This document shows, one piece after another, positions 11,646-57,942 of a stretch of 64,000 nt of DNA. A program made the position numbers and the translations under genes. The stretch is taken from the sequence record ON529852.1; one strand, written 5' to 3'. Position 1 is the stretch's first letter. The number at the start of each line of letters is the position of its first letter. The notes under the pieces were generated by a model. That model was not told where the DNA came from. It saw only the letters and a program-made list of their open reading frames with translations, and ran no database searches.

Positions 11646-11781
11646 AAAAACCCGCCGGCGAGGGACCGGCGGGTTCTCAGGAGCGCTTCTGTTCAGGGAA
11701 GCCGTGCTCGTGAAGAGCACCACGATCGCCTATGCCGGGTATGGGTGTCTGAAACAGGAGTCGCTGCCCGGCGCGACCGGA
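11646..11781 (-). ncRNA. Candidate sRNA F (~135 nt)
   Basis: TTGACA-16-CATTGT promoter (11787-11814), three hairpins, terminator with U-tract, no ATG-initiated ORF. Confidence 0.6.
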
Positions 11782-11828
11782 CCTCGACAATGCCATACTG
11801 GCAGTGTGTGTCAATGGGGACGACATAG

Positions 11829-11941
11829 AAAAAGACCCGCCGGCGAACCGACGGGTCTGGATCGATCAAGATGCTGGGACCTGTTAAAGGTCCACTTGCT
11901 CGGAAGCCGAAGCCCCGGACGACACAGGATACGCGTGCCTT
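11829..11941 (-). ncRNA. Candidate sRNA G (~115 nt)
   Basis: TTGACA-17-CATAGA promoter (11948-11976), hairpins, UUCG terminator with G-U pair and U-tract. Confidence 0.6.
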
Positions 11942-12017
11942 GATCCCTCTATGGGCGAACCCGGAAGGTGTGTCAAGAATCCAGGCGCCGAGATTCCTCC
12001 CGAGGGCGGGCGCCGCG

Positions 12018-12311
12018 TCAGTCGCGGGCCGCCATGGTCTCGTTCCACAGGTAGCCCGCCGGGCGCGGGACCCCGAGGGAGTCCACGAACGGGCGGAACG
12101 GGTAGCCGTTGTTCAGGACGTGCGCGGTCCAGTCGCTCATGCGCGGGATGCGGGCGCGGTTCCGGTGCAGCCAGCACAGGGCGTTGTGCTCCCAGATGTA
12201 GGGGGCTCGGACCCCGTCCCATGTCCCCGACCGGGGATAGAGCGAGGAGGCGAGCATGTCGGCCATGACATAGCCGGCGATGGCGAACTCGTGGTCGTCC
12301 GACGCGGACAT
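12018..12311 (-). CDS. Hypothetical protein
   Basis: ATG overlaps upstream TGA. Confidence 0.55.
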   Translation of the reverse strand: MSASDDHEFAIAGYVMADMLASSLYPRSGTWDGVRAPYIWEHNALCWLHRNRARIPRMSDWTAHVLNNGYPFRPFVDSLGVPRPAGYLWNETMAARD

Positions 12312-13024
12312 CAGGCCTCGCGCCGCTCGGGCACGCCGAACACCGCGTCCGGGTATTGGTCGTGGTTGTAGTTCTCGGCCGCGTCGAAGCCCTGCTCCTT
12401 GGCGATCGCCAGGGCCTCGTCGGCGCTGCTGGCGCGGATCGTCCACTGGTCGCGGCTGGTCCAGGTCACGTCGATGTCGTAGAGGCCTTCGCCTTCCGGC
12501 TCAGGTTCCGGCGTCGGGTCGGGCACGGTGATCGTTACGGCGGTGGTCTCGGCCGCCTGGCCCTGGACCGTTTCCCGAATGGTGACGACGCCTTCGTCGG
12601 TCGCCGAGAGGACTTCGACACGGTGACCCTGGAGCGCGCTCAGGCGCCCTTCTTCTCGGGCCGCCGCGATGACCCGGTTGAGATAGTAGCGCGACACCCC
12701 GTCCATGAAGACCTTGAACTCGGGTTCGAGCAGGACGCGGCGGATGAAGGCTTCATCGGTCACATAGGCGCCGATGTTCGATCGCAGGAAGCGGTGGCGG
12801 AAGTCCGGCAGCGTCTCGGGCGCGATCGCGATCAGATCATGCGCGACCAACTCGGACCCCTCGCCCCGCAGGGCGAACTCGACCTGGGCGTTGCGGGGTA
12901 GGTCGGTCAGACCGGCTTCGGCGTCCGGAGTGACGCGCACCGTCCTCACCGTGGGTTCGCGCTGCGCGATGAACCAGCGGCCGTTGAACTGGAAGAGGCC
13001 TCCGCGATTAGGGCGCTCGGTCAT
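12311..13024 (-). CDS. Protein with N-terminal cold-shock-like OB domain
   Basis: GGLFQFNGRWFIAQ..LPRNAQVEFAL..VAHDL; paralogous to 13041-13247. Confidence 0.6.
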   Translation of the reverse strand: MTERPNRGGLFQFNGRWFIAQREPTVRTVRVTPDAEAGLTDLPRNAQVEFALRGEGSELVAHDLIAIAPETLPDFRHRFLRSNIGAYVTDEAFIRRVLLEPEFKVFMDGVSRYYLNRVIAAAREEGRLSALQGHRVEVLSATDEGVVTIRETVQGQAAETTAVTITVPDPTPEPEPEGEGLYDIDVTWTSRDQWTIRASSADEALAIAKEQGFDAAENYNHDQYPDAVFGVPERREA

Positions 13025-13040
13025 ATGAAGAAACCTTCCA

Positions 13041-13247
13041 TCAGGGGTAGACCTGCTTGACGTCGGCTGCACGGTCGCCGCCGGGGCACACAGGCGCCAG
13101 TCGATAGGTGACAAAGTCGCCGGGCGCGAAGACCTTGTCGTCCACACCGCCCTCAATGGGAAGCCAATCCTCATAGCCCGAGCCCTGGGTGATCAGGAAG
13201 GCGTTCGGACCTGCGCGGTGCAGGATTCCTTGAAGACGTTCGGTCAT
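13041..13247 (-). CDS. Single cold-shock-like OB-fold protein
   Basis: QGIL..FLIT..DWLPI..FAPGDFVTYRL..GDRAADV aligns by eye with the CSD pattern. Confidence 0.6.
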   Translation of the reverse strand: MTERLQGILHRAGPNAFLITQGSGYEDWLPIEGGVDDKVFAPGDFVTYRLAPVCPGGDRAADVKQVYP

Positions 13248-16106: not shown

Positions 16107-16460
16107 ATGCTGAAGCTGTTCCGGCGGCGCGCCCGAACGACCGCAGCGCCCGCCTTTCAACCACCGATGCCGGTCGAGATCGTAGAGACCTATGACGGTT
16201 ACCTGATCCGCAAGGTGGGGACCGACCTCTACGCCTGGTTCGCGAACTCTGATGTCCCTCATTGGCATCCCCGAGATTGGAACAATTTCGGAGTGGTGGG
16301 CGGCTACGCCTACTCGCTCTACCGCACCAAAGACCTCGACCTCGCCCGCTCCGCCCACGCCCAGGTCGAGACCTACATGGGGCGGGAGGCGGAGCGGGCG
16401 CACCGCACGGCCGTGGAGGCCTTCGAGCGCGCCAACTATGCCGAGCGGGTGATTGCGTGA
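16107..16460 (+). CDS. Hypothetical protein
   Basis: Operon packing. Confidence 0.55.
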   Translation: MLKLFRRRARTTAAPAFQPPMPVEIVETYDGYLIRKVGTDLYAWFANSDVPHWHPRDWNNFGVVGGYAYSLYRTKDLDLARSAHAQVETYMGREAERAHRTAVEAFERANYAERVIA

Positions 16461-16620
16461 CGTTCGGCGCCAGACCGCCCATCCCTGGTGATGTGATTCG
16501 CCACATCCGCAGCACCGAGACCACCGGCAAAACCCTATGCGGGCGCGCCATCAGCCGGGTCTACACTGAGCGGTCCGGCTCCCCCGCCACCTGCGCCAAG
16601 TGCATCGGCCTCAGAGACGC

Positions 16621-16872
16621 ATGACCACCGAAACCTACATCTGCCTCAACTGCCGGCAGGACTTCACGGCCCGCATCGCCGACCGTCTGCGCGGCTGGGC
16701 GCGGTTCTGCTGCAAGTCCTGCAAGGCCAAGCAACAGAAGCCCGGCATTCGGGGCCGCCGCGTCACCCACGTCGTCGTCGACGAATACGCCCTGGGCGGC
16801 TCGGTCGCCAACGGCGCCTATCACGTCTTCGATGACACCCACCCTTTCTCGGGCGACGCCCTGGAGCCGTAG
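16621..16872 (+). CDS. Zn-finger protein
   Basis: CLNC..ARFCCKSC. Confidence 0.6.
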   Translation: MTTETYICLNCRQDFTARIADRLRGWARFCCKSCKAKQQKPGIRGRRVTHVVVDEYALGGSVANGAYHVFDDTHPFSGDALEP

Positions 16873-17551: not shown

Positions 17552-17572
17552 GGACCACCGCCAGGGCGACTT

Positions 17573-17623
17573 CACTCCTGCGCTTCGCGCCGTCGTGCCC
17601 GGCTCCGCCGGCCGCACCTCCGG
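17573..17623 (+). repeat. Dispersed double-hairpin element, followed by three CCCGGCAC units (17691-17800)
   Basis: CACTCCT-GCGC(TTC)GCGC-CGTCGTGC-CCGGC(TCC)GCCGG; preceded by AGGACCACCGCC. Confidence 0.85.
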
Positions 17624-18023
17624 TCGTCACGTAGGAGAGTAGGGCAAGCAGGAGGGTCGGCGAGTAGGTCGAGCAGGCATCGCGATCAGGCCCGGCACGC
17701 CCTATTCGGCGTCCTCGGTCCCAGGACACAGGACACCAGGCCCGGCACACCCTATTCGGCCGCCTCGACCGGATCACTCTCCCCGTTCAAGCCCGGCACG
17801 ACCGTAACGATCTCTCGGCCGGACCGCCTGCACGTCTCCAGCAGCGTCTCCTCCAGTCGACCGGCCCGGTTCCTGAACCGCCACACGATGTCGACCTGGC
17901 AGATGAAGGGCTGGTTGTTCAGGATGCGGTCGGCGCGCGCGCGAGCCGAGTCCATGTCGAACGCCTCCGACAGCGGCTCCAGCCGCTTGACGAAATGCTG
18001 TTCGTGATGACGGCGGGTCCCGA

Positions 18024-18949: not shown

Positions 18950-18979
18950 CGGGGCGTCTCCTCTTCAGTTGAGGATCAT

Positions 18980-19006
18980 GTAAAGGAATGATTTGAGGCT
19001 GTCAAC
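18980..19006 (-). promoter_or_regulatory. Phage-type promoter TTGAC-N12-TTCCTTTAC
   Basis: One of 13 co-oriented copies. Confidence 0.8.
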
Positions 19007-19888
19007 CTACTCGTCATCCGCCCGCGTGATGGGGACGCCGGCGAGGCGCTGCGCGCGTTCCCAGATTTCCGCGTCCCTCAAGAAGCCCACCCCGCACTGG
19101 ACGTAGCCGAACTTCTTGGCCTTCACCTGGGCGACCACGTCGACCAGGGTCTGACGCAGCAGCATGGCGTCGGCCGTCGGCGCCAGCTTGCGCGCCATGA
19201 TCTTCTGCCAATCCGCCTCCGCGTGGGCTTGCGCGGCCTCGATCGTGTCGAAGGTCTCAAACGAGAACCACTCGACGACGTCCCAGAGGATGAACTTGTC
19301 GACGTCCTTCTGGATGCCGTAGGAACCGCCCAACCCGTCCGCGATCAGCACGCAGTCCGTGCGACCGAGGTCCACATCGCTCTCGGTCGGCTTGCGCCAG
19401 TCGAGCGGCAGAACAGCCGACGCGGGCGACACAGATGCGGCGTCCGGTCCGGGCCGCCCGACGTTGTAGAAGTAGTTGTCCATCACCTCGCGGACGTCCG
19501 CCTCGGACAGTTCGTCGGCGTCGCGGCGCTTGCGGTTGATGTTGTAGAGGATTTCCGAGATGTCGCGGTCGGACGGCTTGCGCGGAACGACCTGCATGAC
19601 TGCCCCGGATTCCGCCTGCGACGGACGCTGGTTCCAGGCGGCGATTGCGGTCGCGTCGTCGGGCGAAATGACGCTGTCGGGGCAGGGCGGAGCGCCCTCC
19701 GTATAGAGGGAAGCGCAGACGACGCGCCGGCGCATGGGGCCGTAGGAGCCGCCGTCGACGCCCTTCCCCTTGCCGACCCAGTCGCCCATCGTGCCGATCA
19801 GCTTGCCCGGCCCGCCGCAGTGAGGGCAGGGAGCGATCTCCACCAGGGCGACCTCAGGGCTGGGCTTCACATTGATGTCGGACAGCAT
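19007..19888 (-). CDS. Lar-like restriction-alleviation domain protein
   Basis: PCPHCGG..VVC..C..AIAAWNQRP N-terminal signature. Confidence 0.65.
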   Translation of the reverse strand: MLSDINVKPSPEVALVEIAPCPHCGGPGKLIGTMGDWVGKGKGVDGGSYGPMRRRVVCASLYTEGAPPCPDSVISPDDATAIAAWNQRPSQAESGAVMQVVPRKPSDRDISEILYNINRKRRDADELSEADVREVMDNYFYNVGRPGPDAASVSPASAVLPLDWRKPTESDVDLGRTDCVLIADGLGGSYGIQKDVDKFILWDVVEWFSFETFDTIEAAQAHAEADWQKIMARKLAPTADAMLLRQTLVDVVAQVKAKKFGYVQCGVGFLRDAEIWERAQRLAGVPITRADDE

Positions 19889-20171: not shown

Positions 20172-20264
20172 CTAGTTGATCGACAGGATTTCCCTGATCA
20201 GCATGAAGAGGATGATCAGGTAGATGATGATGACGACGCCCAGGGTTACGTAGAGGCCGGACAT
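20172..20264 (-). CDS. 30-aa single-TM peptide MSGLYVTLGVVIIIYLIILFMLIREILSIN (absent from ORF track)
   Basis: SD AAGGA; hydrophobic; fills the gap between genes. Confidence 0.5.
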   Translation of the reverse strand: MSGLYVTLGVVIIIYLIILFMLIREILSIN

Positions 20265-20375
20265 GGTCTGTCCTTCTTGTCCGAAGCGGCCATCAGCCGC
20301 TTGAAGAAGTCGTCCGGCGCCGGACGTAGCGCCGGCATGAGATAGTAGGGATCGCCGTCGCGGGTCCAGTAGGGT

Positions 20376-20675
20376 TCAGGCGGCATCGGCGACCGCCAGT
20401 CGTTTGTCGCGGGCGTCCATCGTCGCCAGCATCATGGACAGACTGCCAATGCACGCAAACGCCCTGGGGTAGCTGTTCGGCTCCGCCTCGGCGTCCCTAC
20501 AAACCGCCTTCACGCCCGCCGCCATGTCTTTGACCGCCAGCGTGCGCTCGGCGGCCAATCGCTCGTTGGCGCGCTCCTGCATGACGTGATGCGTCACGAG
20601 GAAGGTGATGGAGATCGCGAACGCCATGGCGATCCCGACCAGCGCCCACAGGGCGGCCTTGTCATTCTTCGACAC
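20376..20675 (-). CDS. Membrane-anchored hypothetical protein
   Basis: N-terminal TM; SD GAGGAG. Confidence 0.55.
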   Translation of the reverse strand: MSKNDKAALWALVGIAMAFAISITFLVTHHVMQERANERLAAERTLAVKDMAAGVKAVCRDAEAEPNSYPRAFACIGSLSMMLATMDARDKRLAVADAA

Positions 20676-21251: not shown

Positions 21252-21622
21252 GCCGTGATCCCCATGCGGCGCATCAGGCCGCTGATGTAGTGGGCGCCGA
21301 AGGTGTGGTAGGAGAAGAAGAGCGACGGGTGTCCGAAGCAGTCGTCGTTGCGCCCGACCTCGTTGCGGGCCGCCCGCTCACGCGCGTCGCTCGGCATGAT
21401 GCAGCCGTTCGCCGCCGTGTGCAGGGCGCCGACACAGTAGGCGGTCTCGGGGTTCTCCGGGCCGTGGTCGCGTAGGTGGCAGGACGGAACCTGGTTCTCC
21501 TGCACCACGTCGGCATACCATTGCGCCTCGTGCCCGCCCAGGTAGCCCTGGAGGGCGTCCTTGCGCCACGGGCACTCGTTGCAGGGGGTCTTGTGAATCA
21601 GGCGGCGGTTGTCGGTGGTCAC
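21248..21622 (-). CDS. Cys/His-rich phage protein
   Basis: PCNECPWRKD, SCH and YCVG motifs. Confidence 0.65.
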   Translation of the reverse strand: MTTDNRRLIHKTPCNECPWRKDALQGYLGGHEAQWYADVVQENQVPSCHLRDHGPENPETAYCVGALHTAANGCIMPSDARERAARNEVGRNDDCFGHPSLFFSYHTFGAHYISGLMRRMGITA

Positions 21623-21906
21623 GAAAGTTCCCCCAGGCGGCGATCGGTAAGCTGACCCCAGACGTAGCGGCGCATCATGACCGCGCCGGCGCAGCGCTCT
21701 TGCGGGTCACCCGTCTCGACTTTACGGGGCGGCTCGGTGCAGACCATCTGCTCCGCGTTCAGCAGGTCGGCGTGCACGGCCAGGCGCTCGGCCTGCACGT
21801 CGTCCGTGTCCTGGGTGCTGACGCCTACGGCGATGCCGACCACGAAGATGAAGACGGCCGCGATAAACATCACCACCGTCACCATCGGATTGACACGCTC
21901 GCCCAT
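21619..21906 (-). CDS. Membrane-anchored hypothetical protein
   Basis: N-terminal TM; resembles 20376-20675 in architecture. Confidence 0.5.
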   Translation of the reverse strand: MGERVNPMVTVVMFIAAVFIFVVGIAVGVSTQDTDDVQAERLAVHADLLNAEQMVCTEPPRKVETGDPQERCAGAVMMRRYVWGQLTDRRLGELS

Positions 21907-23087: not shown

Positions 23088-23114
23088 GCGGTCCTCCTTC
23101 GTGGTCAGGGGTGT

Positions 23115-23141
23115 GTAAAGGAATGATTTGCGGCTGTCAAC
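23115..23141 (-). promoter_or_regulatory. Phage-type promoter
   Basis: TTGACA-GCCGCAAATCA-TTCCTTTAC. Confidence 0.8.
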
Positions 23142-24726
23142 TCTTTGCGGCTGCCTGATCGTGCTTCATAAGCGACTCGACGAAGTCTGCCCACAGCCCC
23201 TCGTTGACGATGTAGTCGTCACGCCGCCGCAGCAGGTCCGACCACTCGGCCTGCGACCGCCACGGGTTCTCTTCATCTTCCGGCTTGACCTTCAGTTCGT
23301 CCAGCACGACGCGGGCATGGGCGTGCGCCTGGCGGGCTCCGGCTTCGGCCTGTTTCCAGGCGTTGGTGTCCAGATGGCGTTGGCCGGGGTCGTAGAAGGC
23401 CAGGACGAAGTTGAGCGCGCCCCAGCACTTCTCCAGCGCCTCGCTCGCGGCCTTGTAGGCGTCCGACCGAACGACGCGCCCTGCCTCCAGAATCTCTTCG
23501 ACCACAGCCTCGAATTCCCGCTGGGCGATGGGGTCTTCGGGCGTCCGGTATCCCGCACGGTCCTCCATCCCCATGGCCTTCCACCACCCGTAGCGGCGCC
23601 CGATGCGATACAGGGCTTCGGCGGCGACCTCGACAGCCGGCACGTCTTCCGTCAGCGCCAGAGTCGCTTCGGTCTCCAGTTCCTGCGCCGACGCGTCCAG
23701 GGCGGCGTTGTAGTCCGCCGCGCCGCGTTTCAGGTAGTCCATCCAGTCGGTTTCGATGCTACGCTCGAAGTAGGCGGGATCATCCGCCGGCAGGGCGGCG
23801 TTCGTGCGCCAGCCGGCCCGGAACGCCGCGAACTGGTCAGACGCCGCTTGCAGGCCGATCATCGTCCACAGGTCGTCCGCCAGCAGGCGGATGCCGCCCA
23901 AGGGCGCCGACTTGTGCGGATGGTCGAACAGGCTGCCCGCGATCAGATCAAACAGGTGGTCGGCGGACCGCAGGCCTTCCTTCGGACCCGCCGTCGCCTG
24001 CGCCAGGATGTCGCCGATCCAGGCGTTCATCTTCTTGCCGCTGGCGAGCGCCGCCGCCTGGGTCGGATCGACGGCGTTGCGCAGCAGCGGCCACAGGGCG
24101 TTCGCCACGTCGTCCGCCATCAGGTCGTAGTCGCCGGCGCGGCGGTGCGTGATCAGGTCCTTGACCGAGGCCTTCAGCGCCGCCTCATCCTTGAACGCCG
24201 GGGTATGCGGCGTCGCCTTCAAAGCCTCGGACGCCATGTCGCAGGCGCGCTCGGCGGCGGCCCGAAACGCCTCGTCGCCGCTATTGCAGCGGCCGACCCA
24301 CAGCTTGTCCTGGCACTCCCTCAGAGCGGCGCACAGGCGCTCGACGTTGAGCGGATCGGACAGCGCTCGCGCCCACTTCCGAAACTCTACCGCTGTTTTT
24401 CGGCACTGCGCTGCGACCGCGCGGCTGTTGTCCGCCCGCTTGGCCTTGAAGGGGTCGGGGTTCTGCGCCCAGTCCGCCGCATCCTCGTCGTAGCGCACGG
24501 CGGCGTCGTCATTCGATTCGGCCTGACGCAAGCAATAGTCGTGCAGGGCGGCGACGCTGGGATCGGGCGTGAGTTCGGCCGCGACAGCGTCGGCCTGGGC
24601 TTGCGCGGGCTCGCCATAGATGGCGAACCCCTCGCCGGGCTCCCAGTGGACAGGGTAGTCGGCTCCCCACCAGGTGACTTCACGGTCGTTGCGGACCCAG
24701 CCGAGCGGCGTGCGGGTGTCGGTCAT
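23137..24726 (-). CDS. 529-aa mosaic hypothetical protein
   Basis: Long ORF with phage codon bias; SD AAGGAG. Confidence 0.75.
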   Translation of the reverse strand: MTDTRTPLGWVRNDREVTWWGADYPVHWEPGEGFAIYGEPAQAQADAVAAELTPDPSVAALHDYCLRQAESNDDAAVRYDEDAADWAQNPDPFKAKRADNSRAVAAQCRKTAVEFRKWARALSDPLNVERLCAALRECQDKLWVGRCNSGDEAFRAAAERACDMASEALKATPHTPAFKDEAALKASVKDLITHRRAGDYDLMADDVANALWPLLRNAVDPTQAAALASGKKMNAWIGDILAQATAGPKEGLRSADHLFDLIAGSLFDHPHKSAPLGGIRLLADDLWTMIGLQAASDQFAAFRAGWRTNAALPADDPAYFERSIETDWMDYLKRGAADYNAALDASAQELETEATLALTEDVPAVEVAAEALYRIGRRYGWWKAMGMEDRAGYRTPEDPIAQREFEAVVEEILEAGRVVRSDAYKAASEALEKCWGALNFVLAFYDPGQRHLDTNAWKQAEAGARQAHAHARVVLDELKVKPEDEENPWRSQAEWSDLLRRRDDYIVNEGLWADFVESLMKHDQAAAKS

Positions 24727-25286: not shown

Positions 25287-25315
25287 CGACGCTCCTTCAA
25301 CGGTTCGCCCGTCGT

Positions 25316-25342
25316 GTAAAGGAACGGTGTGAGGAATACAAG
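25316..25342 (-). promoter_or_regulatory. Phage-type promoter (variant -35 TTGTAT)
   Basis: TTCCTTTAC core at the same spacing. Confidence 0.65.
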
Positions 25343-25450
25343 CAGAACTTCTTGCCGCCTGACAATATTCGTGTCACTCAGGTTTTACCGTCAGGGATGT
25401 CCCCTGCCGGCCCAGGCGGCTGCGGCCGTCGATCGAAAGGACCACCGCCC

Positions 25451-27847: not shown

Positions 27848-27848
27848 T

Positions 27849-42457: not shown

Positions 42458-42497
42458 CGGCTCGACATTTGTGTCGATAAGTGTCAGGTAAACCAAC

Positions 42498-43209: not shown

Positions 43210-43211
43210 AA

Positions 43212-43891: not shown

Positions 43892-43892
43892 C

Positions 43893-44264
43893 ATGGCGAC
43901 GCTTGAGGGTCGTCTGGGCATCAACATCGAGGTGGACCTTGCGCTCGCCTCGGTGATGATCCGTCGCGGGGCGTGTGAGATGGACGGCTCCGTCGAGGTG
44001 AACTTTGTGGGTGAGGTCGGCCGCGCCGCCGCCTTCAGTCCCCTCTTCACTGTCGATGGCGACCCGAACTGGTTCAACGCCATCGGCTGGGCCACTGACC
44101 GCGCCGGACCCATCACCCACGCCTTCGGCGCCATCGACGACGGCGTCCCGCTCTGCACCGCCTACGAATTCGATACCGGCCCCGTCGTCTATGCCGAAGG
44201 CGGGGGCGGACCCGTCCCTGATCCCGGCGACCTCACCCTTCTTTTCGACAACCGCCTGATCTAG
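43893..44264 (+). CDS. Putative structural protein
   Basis: Module context; C-terminal DPGDLTLLFDNRL resembles the DPDTDLVAVF..AL end of the next gene. Confidence 0.6.
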   Translation: MATLEGRLGINIEVDLALASVMIRRGACEMDGSVEVNFVGEVGRAAAFSPLFTVDGDPNWFNAIGWATDRAGPITHAFGAIDDGVPLCTAYEFDTGPVVYAEGGGGPVPDPGDLTLLFDNRLI

Positions 44265-44282
44265 TCGGTCCGGAGTTCCCCC

Positions 44283-45086
44283 ATGTCCACGCTTACGGTC
44301 CGTCTACAGGACCTCACCACCCGCATCGCCACGGAATGCAAGGCGATCCGCACGTTGATGAACGGCAATGCGGCGTCCAATAGCGCCTTGCTGACGACGG
44401 CCAAGTCCAACCTCCTGGCGGCGATCAACGAACTGCACACCCGCCTGGCGTCCGCCGAAGGCGCGCTGGGTGGAAAGGCCACGATCGACGATGAACTGTC
44501 GAGTCTGACGACGACCTTCTCGTCGAGCAAGATCAGCAACCTGATCAGCGCCAAGCCGTCGATCAACGACAGCGCGGCGTCGGCCACCACCGTCTACTCT
44601 TCGTCCAAGACGGTCACGCTGATCGACGCCAAGGCGGCCATCAATGACGCCACGGGCTCGTCGGCGACCGAGACCTATTCGATCGACAAGATCAAGGCCG
44701 AGATCGCCGCCGCCGTCGGCGCCGTGGACGCCGGCGAAGTCATCAACGACGCCCTCTCTTCCTCGACCACCCGGACCTACTCGATCGACAAGATCAAGTC
44801 GGAACTGTCGGCGACCGCCATCGCCGTCAAGGATGAAATCCTGGGCGGCGCCGGCGCGGCCTATGATACGCTGAAGGAACTGCAAGACCTGCTGATCGCC
44901 GCCGACGGCGACCTGACGGCCTTCAACACCGCGCTCGCCAACCGGGTGCGCACCGACATCAACAATCAGAACCTGACGGCGCTCCAGAAGCAGAACGCCC
45001 GCACCAACATCGACGCTTACGGCTCGCAGGAACTGGGCGACCCCGACACCGACCTCGTGGCGGTGTTCGTCGCCGCCCTGGTCTAA
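44283..45086 (+). CDS. Fibre-like protein with four IND..S.T..YS..KI repeats
   Basis: Ser/Thr-rich ~26-aa repeats; YDTLKELQD.L and QKQNARTNI motifs. Confidence 0.75.
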   Translation: MSTLTVRLQDLTTRIATECKAIRTLMNGNAASNSALLTTAKSNLLAAINELHTRLASAEGALGGKATIDDELSSLTTTFSSSKISNLISAKPSINDSAASATTVYSSSKTVTLIDAKAAINDATGSSATETYSIDKIKAEIAAAVGAVDAGEVINDALSSSTTRTYSIDKIKSELSATAIAVKDEILGGAGAAYDTLKELQDLLIAADGDLTAFNTALANRVRTDINNQNLTALQKQNARTNIDAYGSQELGDPDTDLVAVFVAALV

Positions 45087-45089
45087 GCG

Positions 45090-46268
45090 ATGGCGACGCT
45101 GATCAACCGCCTGTCGGCGGTGTTGCAACGCGTCGCCGACGAGTTCAACACCGTCGCCACGACCCTGTCGGGGAAGGCGGACAAGGCCGACACCTACACC
45201 AAGGCGGAAGTCGACGCCTTGTCCGGAGGCGTAGCCGTATGGACGGCTAAAACGGGAACCTACACGGCCGTGGACGGAGACCGCATTCTTGCGGATACGT
45301 CTGAGGCGGCCTGGACGCTGACCCTGCCTGAAGCCGGTGCCTTCGTCGAAGTGGCGGACCCGATCGGAGCCTGGGCGACCAACGCCCTGACTGTGAAACC
45401 GGTCGCGGGCGAAGCCCTGCGCGGGGTGGCGGGATACCTGATTTGCGATCAGCCGGCGAACCTCCAGTTTCAGAAGCTGTCTGGCGGCGTCTGGCTGGTG
45501 AGGAAGATCGCCCTGGTGCCTGGCAAGCCGCCGATCTCGATCGACCCGCCTGTCATTACGGGTTCCGCATGGGTGGGCGAAACGCTCACCGCCTTGGCGG
45601 GGGCCTGGGAGAATGCGCCGACCCAGTTCAGTTGGCGCTGGTATGCGAATGGCGTGGTGATCGCCGGCGCAACCGCCTCCACCTACACCGTCGCCCAGGC
45701 GGATGTCGGCAAAGCGATTTCGGTTCGGGTCACCGCAACCAATGGTGACGGAGCCACCACGGCTGTATCCGTCGCGACGAGCCAGGTGCCGAAGTCTCAG
45801 GCGGACTGGCTGGCCCACATTGCGAGCCGCGCGCCGACCTTCGCGGACCCGAACCGACAGATTTCCAACGTCGGCGCCGGCACGTTCCGCTATGTCGGAG
45901 GGACGTCGACCGAAACCAGCTACTGGGGCACGCCGTGGCGCCCGCTCTATGCGAACGGCTTCGCCGGAGCCTTGCGTAGCGGTCTCATCCACGGATTCGC
46001 TTCGGCGGCCGCCTTCACCGCCCAGAACGGCAAGACGATGCTGTTCGTCTCCCGTCTGCTGGGCGAGTTCGCGCAGATCGACGGCCACACCCGTAACGGC
46101 CTCACCAGCGCCACCCTGACCCAGGCTCAGAACGGCGGGTCCCTGATCATGGGCTTTACGCTGGATGAAATCTCCTACTGGGACGCCGCGCTCGGCAAGC
46201 CGATGACTATGCGGCCGTCCGCCACTTCAAACAACGGCCCGAGCGATTACACGCACGCCGCCTGGTGA
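45090..46268 (+). CDS. Fibre protein with Ig-like domain
   Basis: ADKADTYTKAEVD, ILADTSEAAWTLTLP, PVITGSAWVGETLT..STYTV..DVGK.I.V.VTATN. Confidence 0.75.
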   Translation: MATLINRLSAVLQRVADEFNTVATTLSGKADKADTYTKAEVDALSGGVAVWTAKTGTYTAVDGDRILADTSEAAWTLTLPEAGAFVEVADPIGAWATNALTVKPVAGEALRGVAGYLICDQPANLQFQKLSGGVWLVRKIALVPGKPPISIDPPVITGSAWVGETLTALAGAWENAPTQFSWRWYANGVVIAGATASTYTVAQADVGKAISVRVTATNGDGATTAVSVATSQVPKSQADWLAHIASRAPTFADPNRQISNVGAGTFRYVGGTSTETSYWGTPWRPLYANGFAGALRSGLIHGFASAAAFTAQNGKTMLFVSRLLGEFAQIDGHTRNGLTSATLTQAQNGGSLIMGFTLDEISYWDAALGKPMTMRPSATSNNGPSDYTHAAW

Positions 46269-47191
46269 CTATGACCCTTCTCAGCGAACTCTTCCCTGAC
46301 GGCTCCAGCGGCGGCCTGCGCCGTGGCGCTCGCATCAGCCTTACCACCTCAACCACGCTCCAGGTGGCGGACCATGTCGCCCTGGCTCCTGCGGGTTACG
46401 GCCTGTGGGGGTGGGACGTCATCTGCATCGGGGCCGGCGGCTCAGGCATGCGTTACTTCGGCGGTTCCGGCGGCGGCCGAGAACAACGTTTCGTCCCGGT
46501 CGCGGAAGTGGGGACGTCGGTGGCGGTCGTGGTCGGCGCCGGCGGCGTTGCCGTGAGCCACAGCATCGGCTCGCCCGGAGGCGACACCAGCTTTGGCGTC
46601 TCGCTCGGGGCGAGCGGCGGAGGCGCCGGGCTAGGGTCAGCGGCGGTCGACGGCATCTTCCCGGCGCGGACCTCAAAACGACCGCTCGTCGACGTCGGAC
46701 CGAGCAGTGCGACCGCCTGGGCCAACTATCAGACCGGAGCCCCAGGGACTTCGGCGACCGCGACGGTCCCCACGAACGTGTTCGACGGAAGTCGCGGCGG
46801 CGGCGGCGGCGTGGGGCCGTCCCAGGCTGGCGGCTCGGTATGGCCTCACCCGAGCGCCATGAGCACCGTGCGTGCGGCGGGGGGCGGCTTTGGGGGCGTT
46901 GACGGGGGCGCACCTGCTTCAGCCGCCCAACTTGCCCTGGTGCGTGTCCGCGCCGACGTCGCTACAGCGGGGCCAGGCAACCCGTCCACAACGCCAGGCG
47001 CTGCCGGCCACCCCGGCGTGGGCGACTATCCGGGCGGCGGCGGCAACGGCAACGCAGGTTCCGCAGGCAATGTAGCGGGTGACGGCGGCTTTCCCGGCGG
47101 TGGCGGCGGCGGCAGCAACGGCTCCAGCGGAACCCAAGGCAATGGCGCCGACGGCGTCGTCTACCTCTATCCGATTTTCGAGCCTCTTTGA
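46265..47191 (+). CDS. Glycine-rich fibre/adhesin-like protein
   Basis: IGAGGSG, GGSGGG, GGDTSFG, GGFPGGGGGG, GNGADGVV. Confidence 0.75.
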   Translation: MTMTLLSELFPDGSSGGLRRGARISLTTSTTLQVADHVALAPAGYGLWGWDVICIGAGGSGMRYFGGSGGGREQRFVPVAEVGTSVAVVVGAGGVAVSHSIGSPGGDTSFGVSLGASGGGAGLGSAAVDGIFPARTSKRPLVDVGPSSATAWANYQTGAPGTSATATVPTNVFDGSRGGGGGVGPSQAGGSVWPHPSAMSTVRAAGGGFGGVDGGAPASAAQLALVRVRADVATAGPGNPSTTPGAAGHPGVGDYPGGGGNGNAGSAGNVAGDGGFPGGGGGGSNGSSGTQGNGADGVVYLYPIFEPL

Positions 47192-47676
47192 TGCGCCACG
47201 CTCTCATCCGCGACGACCGGGTCGTCAATATCATCCTGTGCGGTCCTGACTTCCAGCCGCCCGAAGGCCTCACGCTTGTTGTGTTGGGTGAAGCCGAAAC
47301 GGCTGCGATCGGCTGGCTCTATGACGGCCAAGGCTTCGCGCCCCCGACCGATGTCGCGCCGGAGCCGCAAACGCCGGACCTGCGCCCGACCAAGGCGCGT
47401 TTCGGCGACCTGTTCACCGATGACGAGCACGCCGCCATGAACCTGATCCGTTGGCAGTGCCGTCAGATGGATGCGGCCGAGCGCGCCATCCCTGGCAATC
47501 CTTTGGTCTACGCCGAGACCTTGTTCATCAAGTTCGACCTGCCGGCTGAGTTCATTGAACTGGACTTGCCCATGGTGGCGCAGGGTCTGGGCCTTCTCGG
47601 CATGTTGGGCGTGTTCGGCGACCGCGCCGAGTCGCGCATTCCCCAGGTCCTGGCGAACGAAGACCCGCCGGCCTAA
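47188..47676 (+). CDS. Putative fibre assembly chaperone
   Basis: ALI.D..VVNI...IGWLYDG..F.PP N-terminus directly after the Gly-rich fibre gene. Confidence 0.55.
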   Translation: MMRHALIRDDRVVNIILCGPDFQPPEGLTLVVLGEAETAAIGWLYDGQGFAPPTDVAPEPQTPDLRPTKARFGDLFTDDEHAAMNLIRWQCRQMDAAERAIPGNPLVYAETLFIKFDLPAEFIELDLPMVAQGLGLLGMLGVFGDRAESRIPQVLANEDPPA

Positions 47677-48750: not shown

Positions 48751-48781
48751 ACGGCCCTCCTCGAATGTCGTTGAGGTGGTT

Positions 48782-48808
48782 GTAAAGGAATGATTTGCGG
48801 CTGTCAAT
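48782..48808 (-). promoter_or_regulatory. Phage-type promoter
   Basis: TTGACA-GCCGCAAATCA-TTCCTTTAC. Confidence 0.8.
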
Positions 48809-49046
48809 CCCACTGGAAGGCGTCCCAGTCGATCGCCAGCCGCGCCGCTTCCTCTTCCGAGATCGGGTGAGGGTCCGAACAGACCCGATAGGGCTCGCCC
48901 TTCAGGGTGACACGGCGGATGTGCCGCCCCTGGTGGCGTTCGTAGGCGCTGCACAGGCAATCGCCGCGAACTTCGTAAACCTCGACCACAATGCCAGGCT
49001 CGATCTTGCGCCGCCGTCGCCGGTTCATCGTCTTAAGGGTCGCCAT
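48804..49046 (-). CDS. Hypothetical protein
   Basis: Operon packing. Confidence 0.5.
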   Translation of the reverse strand: MATLKTMNRRRRRKIEPGIVVEVYEVRGDCLCSAYERHQGRHIRRVTLKGEPYRVCSDPHPISEEEAARLAIDWDAFQWD

Positions 49047-49205
49047 GTCGCGCCTCCAGCTTGGTGTTGAGGTCAGCCCAGGCCTGGGCGACGCGACGGT
49101 CGCGCTCCCGATCGGTAATGCGCCCTTGGTTCCGCAGCAGGTCTGCGTCCTCGATCTTCCAGCGGCAATGGCGCTTCAGTTCCGCCTCCGAGGCGACATA
49201 GGCGC

Positions 49206-49829
49206 TCAATCGTCTAGTCCACGCAACGTGAGTTCCGAGAGTGCGCCGCGCCGCGCCATCGCCGCCCGACAACGGTTCAGGAAGTCGGGGTAGGCGGCGA
49301 TCTTGTCCCGAGCGCAGTAGAGGATGCGCAGGTAGGTGACGATCTCGTTGTTGGACATCCGCGTCGGATCGCGCGCGGCGTAGACCTCCGACAGATAGAC
49401 CCAGTTCTCGGCGTGGGCATGGTCGCTCAGATCGCGCATCAACGCCGTCATCAGCGACGTCGACAGGGGCGCGGGGGTCTGGGCGATCGCCCAGCAGCGG
49501 TCCGCCGCCGACTGGGTGTGGAGGCAGGCGACCGTACCGCCGCTCGGATCGTATTCCCCGCCGTGACGGACATGGAATATGTCCCAGATGGCCCGGCCGA
49601 TCTGCTCAATCTGCGCCTGCTCGTGCGTCAGTTGAGGCTCGGGAGGGCGGACCCAATCGGGACCTTGCGGATAGGCTTTTTCGAAATCGGTCCAGGCCTC
49701 GGCCGCTTCACGTCGGGCGTCGTCATGGGACAGATAGCCCAGGCGACGCCGCCTCGCGGCGGTTTCCGCCCGGTATTCGGTCACAGCGCGGGCGTCGTCC
49801 TCGGACGTCTCGGCGTCGAAGTAGGGCAT
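49206..49829 (-). CDS. Hypothetical protein
   Basis: SD GGAGG. Confidence 0.6.
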   Translation of the reverse strand: MPYFDAETSEDDARAVTEYRAETAARRRRLGYLSHDDARREAAEAWTDFEKAYPQGPDWVRPPEPQLTHEQAQIEQIGRAIWDIFHVRHGGEYDPSGGTVACLHTQSAADRCWAIAQTPAPLSTSLMTALMRDLSDHAHAENWVYLSEVYAARDPTRMSNNEIVTYLRILYCARDKIAAYPDFLNRCRAAMARRGALSELTLRGLDD

Positions 49830-53765: not shown

Positions 53766-53795
53766 GCAGCCTCCTATGTGTCGTCGAACCACCGC

Positions 53796-53822
53796 GTAAA
53801 GGAATGAATCCTGACTGTCAAC
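53796..53822 (-). promoter_or_regulatory. Phage-type promoter
   Basis: TTGACA-GTCAGGATTCA-TTCCTTTAC. Confidence 0.8.
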
Positions 53823-53969
53823 CACCGCCAGTTCTGCTGACGTAGCTTGTCCTTTCACTGGGCGTCCTGTTTTCAGCGCGTGCTGAAACCACCGTGGGGA
53901 GTGAAACCGGCCGTCTTGCGCCATCGGCTGGCCGAGATATGGTGTCGGACGGCCATGGGAGGCAAGCGC

Positions 53970-54269: not shown

Positions 54270-54333
54270 GACAACGCCTAAGGACAGGATGTCCGCCTAA
54301 GTATACATCACGGGTAAAAAGAGTCCGATGGCT

Positions 54334-54383
54334 CACTCGTGGGCTTCGCCCCCTCGTGACCGGCTGCCGCCGGCCCCCTCCGG
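54334..54383 (+). repeat. Dispersed double-hairpin element
   Basis: CACTCGT-GGGC(TTC)GCCC-CCTCGTGA-CCGGC(TGCC)GCCGG; CCGGCACAGCCG follows at about 54410. Confidence 0.85.
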
Positions 54384-54506
54384 ACGCCCTGCGCTCAGAC
54401 CGACCCGGACCGGCACAGCCGTTTCGGTCGATGTGGATTTTTTCATGTTGCTTAAGTCAGCTTCATGTTGTTTAAGTCGCGTCATCGCTCAATCAAGGAG
54501 ACCGCG

Positions 54507-54830
54507 ATGCGCTACACGCAAGAACAGATCGCCGCCCAGTCGCAACTGGTGACGGACGCCCTGGAGGAACTGACCGAGCATCAAGCCCGGCTCGCCCACA
54601 TGCTGAAGCAGAACGCCGCGCCGCTGAAGCCGGGGCCGAAACCGGCCCTGCTGAACATGTACGGCAAGCTGACCGAGTACGGCACGATGGTCATGTTCGG
54701 CATGTTCGCGGCCGGCGATCGCGATAGCGACATTGCAGCCCACTTTGAGATCACGCCCTCGGCCGTGTACGCGCGCCGTCAGCGCTGGGAGAGCGCCCAG
54801 CGCAAGAAGAAGGCGCTTCAGTCGGCCTGA
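54507..54830 (+). CDS. HTH DNA-binding protein
   Basis: GDRDSDIAAHFEITPSAVYARR; SD AAGGAG. Confidence 0.7.
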   Translation: MRYTQEQIAAQSQLVTDALEELTEHQARLAHMLKQNAAPLKPGPKPALLNMYGKLTEYGTMVMFGMFAAGDRDSDIAAHFEITPSAVYARRQRWESAQRKKKALQSA

Positions 54831-54840
54831 CGCAGCCTTC

Positions 54841-54977
54841 GTGTTGCCGTATCGGCTGATACGGCAACACGATCTTTACACGAGGCCGGACAGTATCCGG
54901 ACATAAGCGGACATCGTGGCCGTCCATATATGGACGTTTAACCCGCATAACGCCCCTCAAACGTCCATATATGGACG
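54841..54977. promoter_or_regulatory. 13-bp perfect hairpin plus two identical 16-bp palindromes CGTCCATATATGGACG
   Basis: Hairpin 54841-54870; palindromes 54921-54936 and 54962-54977. Confidence 0.7.
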
Positions 54978-55009
54978 GCAGGCTCGACAATCCGGACATT
55001 ATCCGGACA

Positions 55010-55540
55010 TCAGGACGGGCGAAGCTGGCTCAGCCGCATCTCGTCGATCCCCTTCGCCAGGGCGTAGTTGGAATAGGCGCGGTCCCCGGTGATCTCGGCG
55101 TCGACGGCTTCGGCGAACCAGGCCGGCATGTTGACGCCGTGGTTCTCGTCCGGCAGTTCGACCTCCAGGATCATCAGGTGGCGCAGGGCGGGGTGATCGA
55201 ACATGTCGAACTCCAGCGTCAGGTCGCCGTGCGGGATCGACCAACGCGTCTTCTCGATACAGGCGCCTTTTGTGTGGTGGATCGCCAGGTTCAGGTAGGT
55301 CATCCCGTCGATCTCGAACTCGATCTCATGGCTGGCGAAGGCCGAACCTTCGACGGGCCGCTTCATCGTCAGGTGATAGCGCGGGTTGAACAGCTTGCAC
55401 GAGGTCTGGCGGATGCGCACGATCCATTCGCCCGTCCCCTGGATGTAGGCCTGGGTGATCTTCACCATGCGGGCGGCGTCCAGGACGGCTTCCGGCGGCA
55501 GCGCCTTGAGCCGAAACCGGCGTTCGATCTCCACGCTCAT
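55010..55540 (-). CDS. CYTH-domain (triphosphate tunnel) protein
   Basis: MSVEIERRF, I.QAYI, VRIR, LTMK, EIEFEI, IEKTR, EFDMF, ILEVEL, YSNYALA. Confidence 0.9.
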   Translation of the reverse strand: MSVEIERRFRLKALPPEAVLDAARMVKITQAYIQGTGEWIVRIRQTSCKLFNPRYHLTMKRPVEGSAFASHEIEFEIDGMTYLNLAIHHTKGACIEKTRWSIPHGDLTLEFDMFDHPALRHLMILEVELPDENHGVNMPAWFAEAVDAEITGDRAYSNYALAKGIDEMRLSQLRPS

Positions 55541-56262: not shown

Positions 56263-56526
56263 GCCGCTTTTCTGCCTTGTCGATTTTTTCGTGTCAACCG
56301 CAACGGCGCCGGTTGACAGCAATCCCGGCACATGCGAGAAGGACCACCTCGGCGGCGCGGTCCCAGGACAGCGTCGTCGGGCGATCTCGACCGGCACACG
56401 GGCTTGGGAAGATCAGAGGAATAGATGGGGAACCACAGCAGCGCTCCGGCGGGCTGCCCGATCACCGCGCTATCCTTGCGGACCCCTCAGGGGATAGGCT
56501 CTGACGCCGCAAAGATGTCGAGAGGA

Positions 56527-56810
56527 CGGACCCTGCTGAACGGCGCTGTAACGCCGCCTCGGTAGGAACAAGGTCGAGCCGTATCGCCCTTCGGGCGCTG
56601 CATCGACTGGACCCCGCCCATTACCAGTATCGTAGGTGGCTAAGCGTTCGCCTCCCCCGTCCGGGACATGTACCGGCCGGACCGAGAGGTATTCGCGAGG
56701 CGAGCACGCCAGGGTTACGTCACCGAAGCCGGTTCACCCGCCCGGCGCGATCGAGGGTCCATGGCCCTCCTTACCAAACCCCCGTCGGCTCGCGCCGGCG
56801 GGGGTCTCTT
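56527..56810 (+). ncRNA. Candidate multi-domain RNA D
   Basis: Long-range helices GGACCCT/AGGGTCC, CTCGGT/ACCGAG, TTCGCCTC/GAGGCGAG; UUCG hairpin; terminator-like stem at 56777-56810. Confidence 0.5.
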
Positions 56811-56821
56811 CTTGAGGGCCT

Positions 56822-57040
56822 ATGCCGTACCAGATCAGAATCACCGCCGTCGATTGCGAAACCCTCTCGGGCCAGACAGGCCTCAAGGGGATGATCTCAG
56901 GCTTGCGCACCATGAAGGCCTGGGCCGAGGAACATACGCCGGGATGGACCTACATCGCGGGCCTTCAGCGGTTCCAATTCCAGACGGCGGAGGACTTGGA
57001 CCGGTTCGAAGCGACGTTCAAAAGCGCGCCGGAGGCCTGA
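56822..57040 (+). CDS. Hypothetical protein
   Basis: SD GAGG. Confidence 0.55.
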   Translation: MPYQIRITAVDCETLSGQTGLKGMISGLRTMKAWAEEHTPGWTYIAGLQRFQFQTAEDLDRFEATFKSAPEA

Positions 57041-57317
57041 CGAGTCTTCAAGGCTGAATCCGGACCGGACCTGAAGGTGCCGGGTCTCGTGATGATCCGG
57101 TCTGATTTTCCTGGTGTTTCCTGCGCCTTATCCCAACAATTTGTTAAGACCTCCGACGGCGCCTCCAGGCGGACTCGCTGCGCTGTTGTCGGGCGAGGCT
57201 TCCCTGCCGCCGGGGGATGGCGGAGCCTCGCGGCCGGAGCGTAATCGGGGGGCGTCATGCGCTCGCACAGGGAAGTGTCCTGCCAAGGACAAGGCTTTGT
57301 GGCACACTTGGGGCGAA

Positions 57318-57568
57318 ACGAAAAGCCCCGCCGGAGAACCGACGGGGCTTATCCACAAGGGAAGGTCCTAAGACCTCGCTCGGTGCCTCTTGCCTTACGG
57401 CTATCCCGCACAACGCGTGGACCCCTTACAGGGCGGGTGGACGCTTTTGCTCCGAAGAGCGCAACCGATCTATCGTCCGAAACAGGGTGAGACCTCGGCG
57501 GCCGCACGAGGTCTCGGGCGTTCTCAAGCCGGCGTTCCGATCCTCGTACTGACCGGCGATTGAACAGC
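57318..57568 (-). ncRNA. Candidate multi-branch RNA C (~250 nt)
   Basis: TTGACT-17-CATACT promoter (57573-57601); two GUAA and one UUCG tetraloop; terminator with U-tract. Confidence 0.65.
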
Positions 57569-57597
57569 CGGGAGTATGGCCCAGCTTGACTGTAAAG

Positions 57598-57942
57598 TCA
57601 AGACCGCGCGGCGAGGGAGCAGGCCATGGAGTTCGGATCGTAGTCGTTGGATCGGTAGCCTTCCGCAAACAGGTAGGTCTGGCCGCCGGTCTGGAAGGTG
57701 TAGACGACGCAATGTTCGCCCGTGAAGACCCGCGTCAGACCGACGGCGGCGCGTTCCTGGGCGGCCTTGTCAGCGGCGAAGCGCCGTCGTTCCTCGGCGG
57801 TCATCGGCCGGGTCTGATTCGGCCCCACGTCGACGAGGGTCGGGACGTGCTCGACCGGCGGCGCCGGGCTCTGCGACGGCGCATTGCAGGCGGCCGTCAG
57901 CAGCATGGCGGCGGCGGCGAGGATGAGTGTGGTCTTGGTCAT
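57598..57942 (-). CDS. Lipoprotein
   Basis: Lipobox LTAAC; paralog of 58388-58696. Confidence 0.75.
   Translation of the reverse strand: MTKTTLILAAAAMLLTAACNAPSQSPAPPVEHVPTLVDVGPNQTRPMTAEERRRFAADKAAQERAAVGLTRVFTGEHCVVYTFQTGGQTYLFAEGYRSNDYDPNSMACSLAARS

Follow-up and report, generated by a model that had tools for sequence, protein, structure and literature searches.

Brevundimonas phage vB_BpoS-Kabachok (ON529852.1) is a giant phiCbK-like phage of the Dolichocephalovirinae with a genome of 356,285 bp. The stretch analyzed here, which we call the window, corresponds to its bases 1-64000 (megablast, 100% identity), and its coordinates coincide with those of the record. Kabachok has four close relatives, Papperlapapp and Domovoi (~94-98% identical) and Marchewka and Bambus (~88-90%), and two distant relatives, Kikimora and Gurke, which have almost no DNA in common with it. 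The Kabachok genome paper annotates only coding sequences (CDSs) and transfer RNAs (tRNAs) (PMC10070969), and no noncoding RNAs (ncRNAs) are reported in either the phiCbK genomics paper or the phiCbK RNA sequencing (RNA-seq) paper. A sequence-only reading of the window had proposed seven structured ncRNAs, lettered F, G, E, A, B, D and C, in gaps free of open reading frames (ORFs). As these letters could not be tied to exact coordinates, we evaluated all 16 gaps of at least 98 bp in the deposited annotation between 11.5 and 57.6 kb; the labels E and A, for units at 33.4 and 43.1 kb, are our own. The outer limits of the proposed series fit real features: a minus-strand terminator has its 3′ end at 11646, and 57603 falls at the -35 box of a minus-strand TTGACT-N17-CATACT promoter. 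Our analysis indicates that the segment probably holds a small set of genuine phage ncRNA genes, not seven, namely the 33.4-kb RNA on the minus strand, D on the plus strand and C2 on the minus strand, with the other gaps being ordinary.

The gaps were screened for coding potential with a codon log-odds model trained on 123 annotated CDSs, in which true genes give 0.58 ± 0.17 bits per codon and spurious ORFs give -0.50 ± 0.43. Only three weak ORF signals appeared across the gaps. ARAGORN identified tRNA-Arg (27488-27562) as the sole tRNA or transfer-messenger RNA (tmRNA) in the window, and Rfam at gathering thresholds returned nothing else from the whole window. Sensitive Rfam scans by E-value of 53.7-57.7, 33.24-33.58 and 31.12-31.37 kb gave sub-threshold, chance-level matches only. 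As a neutral yardstick for constraint, identity to Marchewka and Bambus was compared with that at third codon positions in genes no more than 2 kb away, referred to below as flanking third positions.

The first of the three RNAs, unit E, is a small RNA (sRNA) cassette of promoter, RNA and terminator at 33313-33551 (minus strand), within the gap 33264-33546. Its putative promoter, CTTGACTTT with a -35 TTGACT (33551-33545), overlaps the stop codon of KABACHOK_00590. The RNA body (~33515-33313, ~200 nt) is predicted to form 5-6 hairpins and has a conserved U-rich stretch just 5′ of the terminator, which consists of an 11-bp GC stem (33340-33317), a TTCG loop and a U-tract (33316-33313, TTTT). Beyond the terminator, a TTGACA box at 33297 serves the next gene. 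The 33.4-kb RNA is 96.6-97.0% identical to its counterparts in Marchewka and Bambus, where flanking third positions are 85-86% identical (P 2e-6 and 5e-8), and it is still recognizable in Kikimora (83.4% over 253 nt) and Gurke (82%), although the upstream protein is non-homologous between the clades. An RNAalifold consensus from the alignment of seven phages has 74 pairs, four of them with double compensatory changes. One variable hairpin is closed by GGGGC/GUUCC, GGGAC/GUCCC or GGAGAU/GUCUCC, and a long-range helix pairs as CCGAA/UUCGG in one clade but as CUGAA/UUCAG in the other. Between Kabachok and Kikimora, the structure conservation index (SCI) is 0.97, with 5/60 pairs broken. The unit has neither a score in the codon model nor a codon-phase bias in its substitutions, and the sensitive Rfam scan matched only the terminator and no family. 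The sequence-only reading had suggested roles as decoys, antisense regulators or scaffolds. A search for antisense targets within the window gave longest matches of 13-15 nt, and 7/40 shuffles reach at least 15 nt. The best match, 15 nt at the start codon of KABACHOK_00230, was rejected as being at chance level and not conserved.

The largest of the three, D, occupies 56313-56813 on the plus strand within the gap 56263-56821 and was delimited by alignments, RNAalifold and a core common to both clades. Its predicted promoter has a -35 TTGACA (56313-56318) and diverges from that of KABACHOK_01080, a minus-strand gene whose box is also TTGACA. The body (~56345-56813, ~470 nt) contains three invariant runs (56375-56444, 56465-56535 and 56648-56727) and ends in a terminator with a 12-bp stem (56778-56805), 9 nt before the ribosome-binding site (RBS) and ATG (56822) of KABACHOK_01090. 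That 72-amino acid (aa) gene is real (substitutions of 8/3/14 by codon position 1/2/3) and lacks its own TTGAC box. D is 0.84-0.93 identical to Marchewka and Bambus, compared with 0.73-0.75 for flanking third positions (P 1e-6 and 5e-17). From five full-length copies, RNAalifold predicts 158 pairs, including long-range ones, with 6 compensatory changes. In one variable hairpin pairing is kept by wholly different sequences, another hairpin is cleanly deleted in Marchewka, and both Bambus and Marchewka have a 62-nt insertion 5′ of the terminator.

The core of D (56382-56525, 145 nt) is 85.6% identical to Kikimora and Gurke, where it lies inside a 1,049-bp unannotated gap with a TTGACA box before it and its own terminator after it, followed by a separate promoter of the P1 type described below; the proteins downstream of D are unrelated between the clades. 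Across the split the core has an SCI of 0.96, and broken pairs number 0/42 on the plus strand versus 7/44 on the antisense strand, which implies G-U pairs. D has no coding score, no phase bias in its substitutions, and frame-breaking indels. No match was found in Rfam, including the GOLLD, ROOL and HEARO covariance models, at E-values up to 1. Several other identities for D were considered and rejected. Within the core, an ORF of 48 codons begins at 56425 behind a good RBS, but its ATG is absent from Kikimora and Gurke, where the frame also has a 1-nt deletion. A T-loop-like motif in the Kikimora homolog raised a tmRNA or tRNA, but ARAGORN was negative and Rfam sub-threshold; ARAGORN likewise found nothing at the Kikimora and Gurke loci with RNA homologs. 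A GAGCCGTAT motif raised a group I or II intron, but there are no flanking exons, the hairpin varies between phages, and Rfam gives no match.

Five features follow one another from left to right in the gap 57041-57597: the terminator belonging to the 72-aa gene (57079-57101), a copy of the P2 motif described below, a constrained block that we call C1, a minus-strand hairpin and a minus-strand promoter. The last two delimit the sRNA cassette C2 (57312-57602, minus strand), which we recognize by its promoter, terminator, fold and a core conserved in Kikimora. The putative promoter (CTTGACTTT / TTGACT-N17-CATACT, 57602-57573) overlaps the stop codon of KABACHOK_01100, the RNA would run from ~57566 to 57312 (~255 nt), and the terminator has a 12-bp stem (57350-57323) and a minus-strand U-tract with the tail TTCGTTTCG. 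RNAalifold predicts 88 pairs with 4 compensatory changes. Identity to Marchewka and Bambus is 0.86-0.87 versus 0.76 at flanking third positions, and C2 has no coding score, no substitution phase bias and frame-breaking indels. A core of 51 nt and two hairpins (57390-57440) is 84.3% identical to Kikimora 4894-4944; between the two phages its stems are invariant and its loops differ. The Kikimora segment lies within a 568-bp unannotated gap, between a TTGACG-N17-TATACA promoter and a clean terminator. Directly after this cassette (Kikimora L019, 4990-5249), a second box, TTGACG-N17-TATACG, is followed by more unannotated sequence that may be another small RNA unit.

C1 itself (57106-57311, listed on the plus strand) was picked out by its conservation and predicted fold and consists of P2 (57106-57139) followed by the block proper (57140-57311). 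Its identity to Marchewka and Bambus is 0.88-0.89 versus 0.76 at flanking third positions, and a 66-nt run (57225-57290) is identical in all five close phages. A multi-branch fold is predicted, with no informative variation to reveal the strand. There are frame-breaking indels in Marchewka and Bambus, no coding score and no phase bias; blastn found no C1 homolog in Kikimora; and P2 is the sole signal upstream. We therefore regard C1 as constrained but ambiguous, either an RNA or a DNA element.

Taken together, the 33.4-kb RNA, D and C2 are 0.84-0.97 identical to Marchewka and Bambus against 0.73-0.86 at third positions (P 1e-4 to 5e-17), a mark of purifying selection. They also reappear in the second clade. 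When the window is compared with Kikimora 1-50000, blastn gives 30 matches, of which the coding ones are 66-80% identical and the most conserved are the RNA cores, copies of the T1 element, the tRNA and a tRNA-like element. The best coding match at the DNA level, KABACHOK_00360 (21297-21635), is 79.9% identical over 339 nt, below the RNA cores. In Kikimora, each of the 33.4-kb RNA, D and C2 again has its own promoter-like box and terminator. The sequence-only reading had imagined cassettes that move like small accessory genes, a description that suits these three units, which recur in Kikimora (the 33.4-kb RNA and the D core also in Gurke) in different neighborhoods, with unrelated tested neighbors for the 33.4-kb RNA and D, and at 83-86% identity versus a maximum of 80% for coding matches, but that does not extend to the rest. 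Comparison of these genomes thus demonstrates an absence of coding signal, purifying selection, modular conservation across clades and maintained pairing. Blastn against 50,697 phage records found homologs of the RNAs in seven Brevundimonas phages only. IMG/VR viral contigs, JGI metagenomes and the species-representative genomes of GTDB were also scanned for exact words, namely 17-23-mers that are invariant in the D core, the 33.4-kb RNA or C1; no homologs appeared, the hits being chance 17-21-mers without flanking similarity.

Promoter pairs and terminator stems had been taken as the marks of these units, with no primary sequence common to them beyond terminator stems and the short motif GCCGTATCG. 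Neither point was confirmed in that form. Generic sigma-70 promoter matches are not enriched over shuffles (three scans: 3 vs 1.8, 1 vs 2.0 and 2 vs 1.0), and nor are generic terminator matches (12 vs 9.5, 15 vs 10.6 and 9 vs 4.5), among which the only exceptions are a few terminators with long stems. Against this unenriched background, candidate TTGAC boxes and intrinsic terminators occur at the units and are kept between phages, Kikimora among them. A sequence in common does exist, as CTTGACTTT occurs in 3 exact copies in the window versus 0.24 expected (0/100 shuffles reach 3), and every copy marks the 5′ edge of a cassette, those of the 33.4-kb RNA, the 43.1-kb unit and C2. The relatives keep this word at the orthologous sites, and ~50 kb of each contain no other copy. 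In addition, F, D and C2 have terminators that vary on a single plan, CCCGYCGG-loop-CCGRCGGG, and T1 lies in three of the gaps. By comparison, GCCGTATCG has 5 matches versus 0.88 expected, but three lie within one 49-bp tandem repeat and another in a hairpin at 54.9 kb, so that there are effectively 3 independent sites and the excess is not significant.

Beyond the three well-supported RNAs, we count up to four tentative RNA units. At 43094-43210 (plus strand), unit A is a short cassette or leader with CTTGACTTT at 43094-43102, an RNA of ~85 nt with one hairpin, and a strong terminator (43175-43210) that runs directly up to the TTG annotated as the start (43212) of the plus-strand operon 43212-47676. 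Its folding z-score is -2.3. It is found in Kabachok, Papperlapapp and Domovoi only, at 99.4% identity, and as these three phages are near-identical it has no comparative support; we consider it a plausible cassette that may be an attenuating leader. Marchewka and Bambus lack the whole 4.6-kb block 43047-47676, which comprises this unit and seven plus-strand genes, and in both of them the genes on either side of it are directly adjacent. Unit F (11646-11814, minus strand) lies just after an operon terminator (11858-11833) and has a -35 TTGACA (11814-11809), an RNA of ~140 nt and a terminator at ~11680-11646. The terminator is conserved and a hairpin has one compensatory change, U-A to C-G; overall identity is 0.79, not above the 0.83 of flanking third positions, and there are many indels. 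F is thus a plausible cassette without comparative support.

The region 31133-31357 (plus strand) holds a divergent promoter region and a conserved 5′ leader of ~170 nt for the gene 31358-31804. Identity is 0.94-0.95 versus 0.83-0.84 at flanking third positions. Within the leader is a degenerate tRNA-like element (31245-31335) with the T-loop GGGTTCGACTCCC, of which 64 nt are 81% identical to Kikimora 32390-32452. The element was rejected as a tRNA: ARAGORN is negative, the Rfam tRNA-Sec model gives 18.7 bits against a threshold of 47 bits, acceptor pairs are mismatched, and there is no 7-nt anticodon loop. We class this region, too, as constrained but ambiguous. Next to it, a P1 promoter (31077-31124) falls within KABACHOK_00540 (30818-31132), at its 5′ end as annotated. 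The Kabachok start of this gene is probably wrong, since Papperlapapp, Marchewka and Bambus have homologs whose annotation is 69 nt shorter; the true intergenic region would then measure ~294 nt.

The remaining gaps are of other kinds. All 16 are real gaps with almost no coding signal in the codon model, yet at least four are not ORF-free as had been supposed, as they hold missed small ORFs. We scored these by substitutions at codon positions 1/2/3 against Marchewka, and none of the four contains indels. A 55-aa ORF (16457-16624, plus strand; 9/5/20) fills the gap 16461-16620, its stop overlapping the start of the next gene as ATGA. A 46-aa ORF (20246-20386, minus strand; 7/7/18) fills the gap 20265-20375 and is annotated in Domovoi, and a 58-aa ORF (49033-49209, minus strand; 2/3/9, 0.53 bits per codon) fills the gap 49047-49205 and is annotated in Marchewka and Bambus. 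The fourth, of 81 aa (27602-27847, plus strand; 2/4/15), lies just after tRNA-Arg and is annotated in Marchewka. No Pfam family was found for any of them. The region downstream of tRNA-Arg (27563-28430; L003 17459-18424) is a replacement hotspot. In Kabachok it contains the 81-aa ORF, T1, 3.4 copies of a 49-bp tandem repeat (27919-28083) and ~350 nt without a match in the relatives. Papperlapapp has there a 321-aa CDS that is labeled 'RNA polymerase' but is really a multi-helix-turn-helix (HTH), sigma-70-region-4-like protein, and Domovoi and Bambus have a 91-aa minus-strand gene.

Four further gaps (25287-25450, 39937-40004, 42418-42497 and 53766-53969) contain one copy each of P1, a strong and strongly conserved phage promoter motif of the form TTGACA-N11-ATTCCTTTAC. 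There are 13 copies between 18966 and 61685, all on the minus strand (e.g. 18966-19013, 23101-23148 and 48768-48815) and all but the one at 31077-31124 lying 0-23 nt from an annotated CDS start. None of the 13 is upstream of a candidate RNA unit; all serve minus-strand genes, and P1 is probably the principal class of promoter here. In Kikimora, too, a gene is preceded by a P1-like copy. P2, a 34-nt motif with two TCCTA/G half-sites one helical turn apart followed by TATCCCAA, has 12 copies (277-310, six in 7234-7559, 8914-8947, 9718-9751, 9969-10002, 10971-11004 and 57106-57139). They cluster 7-11 kb from terL, with an isolated copy at C1, and the minus-strand annotations beside them are correct. 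The corresponding region of phiCbK-like phages is where their ~10-kb terminal repeat ends (PMC3556154). T1 is a dispersed, GC-rich element of 67 nt (8987-9053, 9812-9878, 17559-17625, 27835-27901 and 54320-54386) that is also present in Kikimora (L019, at 1363, 17324, 32074 and 46130), with 83-90% identity between the clades. It usually lies from a few to 50 nt past the end of a plus-strand gene or tRNA, does not exceed its shuffles in folding stability (z -1.1 to +0.4), and may be a 3′-end or protein-binding element.

Two of the T1 copies lie in gaps that do not behave as RNA genes. The convergent gap 17552-17751 (no strand assigned) consists of T1 and a duplicated remnant of a gene 3′ end, and evolves faster than neutral sites. 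The gap 54270-54506 (plus strand), a regulatory and 3′-end region, has T1, a single copy resembling the 49-bp repeat (54392-54432) and, just upstream of an HTH gene (54507-54830), two 18-nt direct repeats (54442-54459 and 54462-54479); its identity is not above flanking third positions. On the other side of the HTH gene, the convergent region 54831-55009 (no strand assigned) looks like operator DNA. It contains a 15-bp perfect terminator hairpin with GCCGTATCG (54839-54873, z -7.2), two perfect 16-bp palindromes CGTCCATATATGGACG (54921-54936 and 54962-54977) and ATCCGGACAT repeats; the operator-like repeats that flank the HTH gene include sites at 54895-54904 and 54990-55010. The region has a z-score of about -9 on both strands, a value that DNA palindromes would be expected to give, and it is conserved no more than neutral sites. 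About half of the gaps, several divergent mRNA promoter regions among them, are thus not RNA genes, and of the seven structured ncRNAs first proposed, three are well supported (33.4 kb, D and C2); the number seven and the uniformity of the set are not.

Several observations count against calling even these three independent RNA genes. Their folding z-scores (-0.2 for the 33.4-kb RNA, -1.6 for D and -2.3 for C2) are unremarkable, in a 65%-GC genome where such scores are uninformative and coding controls give -0.4 ± 1.0. In the five close genomes alone, covariation of the RNAs is no better than that of coding controls (40 windows: 79 pairs, 0.85 ± 1.2 compensatory changes with a maximum of 5, SCI 0.89), and antisense strands score alike. 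The contrast that does inform lies across the Kabachok-Kikimora split, where the SCI of the 33.4-kb RNA and the D core (0.97 and 0.96, with 8% and 0% of pairs broken) exceeds that of twelve coding controls (0.73 ± 0.10, maximum 0.92, with ~30% of pairs broken), but it is imperfectly matched because the controls are somewhat more diverged (74% vs 82-84% identity). As there are no homologs outside the seven Brevundimonas phages, alignments are 5-7 sequences deep and effectively represent two clades, and divergence is a mosaic along the genome. The literature searched yielded no RNA-seq for these phages, so that the promoters, 5′ ends and strands of the units are predictions. Finally, a cis-leader role for D is possible, because its terminator directly precedes a real 72-aa gene without its own promoter.

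This last point leads to an alternative in which the conserved segments are cis-acting parts of mRNAs, such as 5′ leaders, attenuators or 3′ untranslated regions (UTRs), and not independent RNA genes. D would be a leader or attenuator of the 72-aa gene, the 43.1-kb unit an attenuator of the 43212-47676 operon and the 31.2-kb element a leader of the gene at 31358, as the placing of the D and 43.1-kb terminators against the starts of KABACHOK_01090 and the operon would suggest; C2 and the 33.4-kb RNA, which begin at the stop codons of same-strand upstream genes, would be 3′ UTRs. However, the Kikimora homolog of D stops at a terminator of its own, behind which a separate promoter of the P1 type serves the next gene, and the two clades have non-homologous neighbors beside D and the 33.4-kb RNA, so neither RNA is tied to one mRNA. 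The gene after the 33.4-kb terminator has its own TTGACA box, and the conserved CTTGACTTT boxes argue for separate initiation. We consider a purely cis-acting explanation unlikely, although it deserves to be taken seriously.

A role for the blocks as DNA, as protein-binding sites or replication or packaging signals with RNA folds as a by-product of GC-rich palindromes, would suit a window rich in repeats and palindromes (P1, P2, T1 and those at 54.9 kb), as well as the similar antisense RNAalifold scores on close genomes and C1, which follows P2 and has no strand-revealing variation. It fits poorly with the D core, whose pairs are unbroken on the plus strand only and imply G-U pairs, and with stems that are conserved as loops vary and a D hairpin that is lost as a whole module. 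UNCG-type tetraloops and U-tract terminators are likewise strand-specific features of RNA, and we judge the DNA explanation improbable. That the gaps are unannotated small protein genes is true of the four at 16.5, 20.3, 27.6 and 49.1 kb, with their third-position bias and, for three of them, annotation in relatives, and the 48-codon ORF of the D core might seem to add a fifth. Extending this to the 33.4-kb RNA, D, C1 and C2 would require coding in units with no coding score, no phase bias and frame-breaking indels, and in a D-core frame that has lost its start and a nucleotide in Kikimora and Gurke, which we find hardly credible.

We thus favor a small set of independent RNA genes, and hypothesize that each of the three is most likely transcribed by host RNA polymerase from its TTGAC-type promoter and most likely ends at its GC-rich intrinsic terminator. 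Each RNA is predicted to fold into several hairpins, with stems kept and loops varying, and the units behave as self-contained modules, their cores residing in unrelated gene neighborhoods in the second clade. We speculate, with low confidence, that the 33.4-kb RNA and C2 are trans-acting regulatory sRNAs. For D, a protein-binding or scaffold RNA seems more likely, because it is large and highly structured with long invariant runs; this too is held with low confidence, as is the suggestion that in the Kabachok group D may also provide the 72-aa gene with a leader and with the sole promoter visible for it.

Giant phiCbK-like phages are annotated as ~85% hypothetical proteins and tRNAs, and no ncRNA has been described in them. 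That RNA modules are among the best-conserved nucleotides of two clades whose neighboring genes have been replaced points to RNA functions at least as indispensable as those of proteins. The three RNAs offer precise, deletable targets for studies of host takeover or defense evasion in a tractable Brevundimonas/Caulobacter-type system. The analysis also corrects the annotation by four missed genes and one probable wrong start and defines what is probably the main promoter motif of the phage, and the finding that most gaps are not RNA genes tempers the claim of seven ncRNAs.

Among known systems, the nearest parallel is the jumbo phage PA5oct, in which phage-encoded small ncRNAs were found by RNA-seq (PMC7318152). 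Like the Kabachok units, they are short, noncoding, independently terminated and located between protein genes of a very large phage, and belong to no family. The Kabachok RNAs differ in being known by sequence comparison alone, have no sequence or Rfam relation to described phage ncRNAs, and are confined to the seven Brevundimonas phages. They can also be set beside Hfq-type trans-acting sRNAs, which have a promoter, a length of 50-300 nt, a U-rich site and a Rho-independent terminator. The 33.4-kb RNA and C2 resemble these in having a TTGAC-type promoter, a multi-hairpin body of 200-255 nt and a GC stem with a U-tract, and the 33.4-kb RNA also has a U-rich stretch and a terminator U-tail. 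The target search, which covered the window, gave complementarity at chance level, and the invariance of their long stems and loops would suit protein binding or tertiary structure better than a simple seed. D and the 43.1-kb unit recall attenuator leaders or riboswitches in placing a strong terminator immediately before an ORF; however, Rfam gives no match to a known aptamer, D is far longer than typical leaders, and its Kikimora homolog is uncoupled from the downstream gene. The element at 31245-31335 is like a tRNA in its canonical T-loop, partial acceptor-like helix and conservation across clades.

GOLLD, ROOL and HEARO are large structured RNAs often carried by phages, and D shares with them a length of ~470 nt, a multi-domain fold, a phage genome, a lack of coding and long invariant runs. 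It differs in matching none of their covariance models and in being shorter than GOLLD or ROOL, and its alignment is too shallow for it to be called 'ornate'. A role as a protein-binding or self-assembling RNA machine has reportedly been proposed of late for other large phage-borne RNAs. By extension, D could be the first representative of a new class of structured RNAs of giant phiCbK-like phages, large (~470 nt) and multi-domain, and such a machine rather than a simple regulator, and with the 33.4-kb RNA and C2 part of a conserved RNA toolkit, a proposal that we advance tentatively and with more doubt than conviction. Judged by their sequences, the three RNAs are new members of the phage ncRNAs that belong to no known Rfam family, and D is the most unusual among them.

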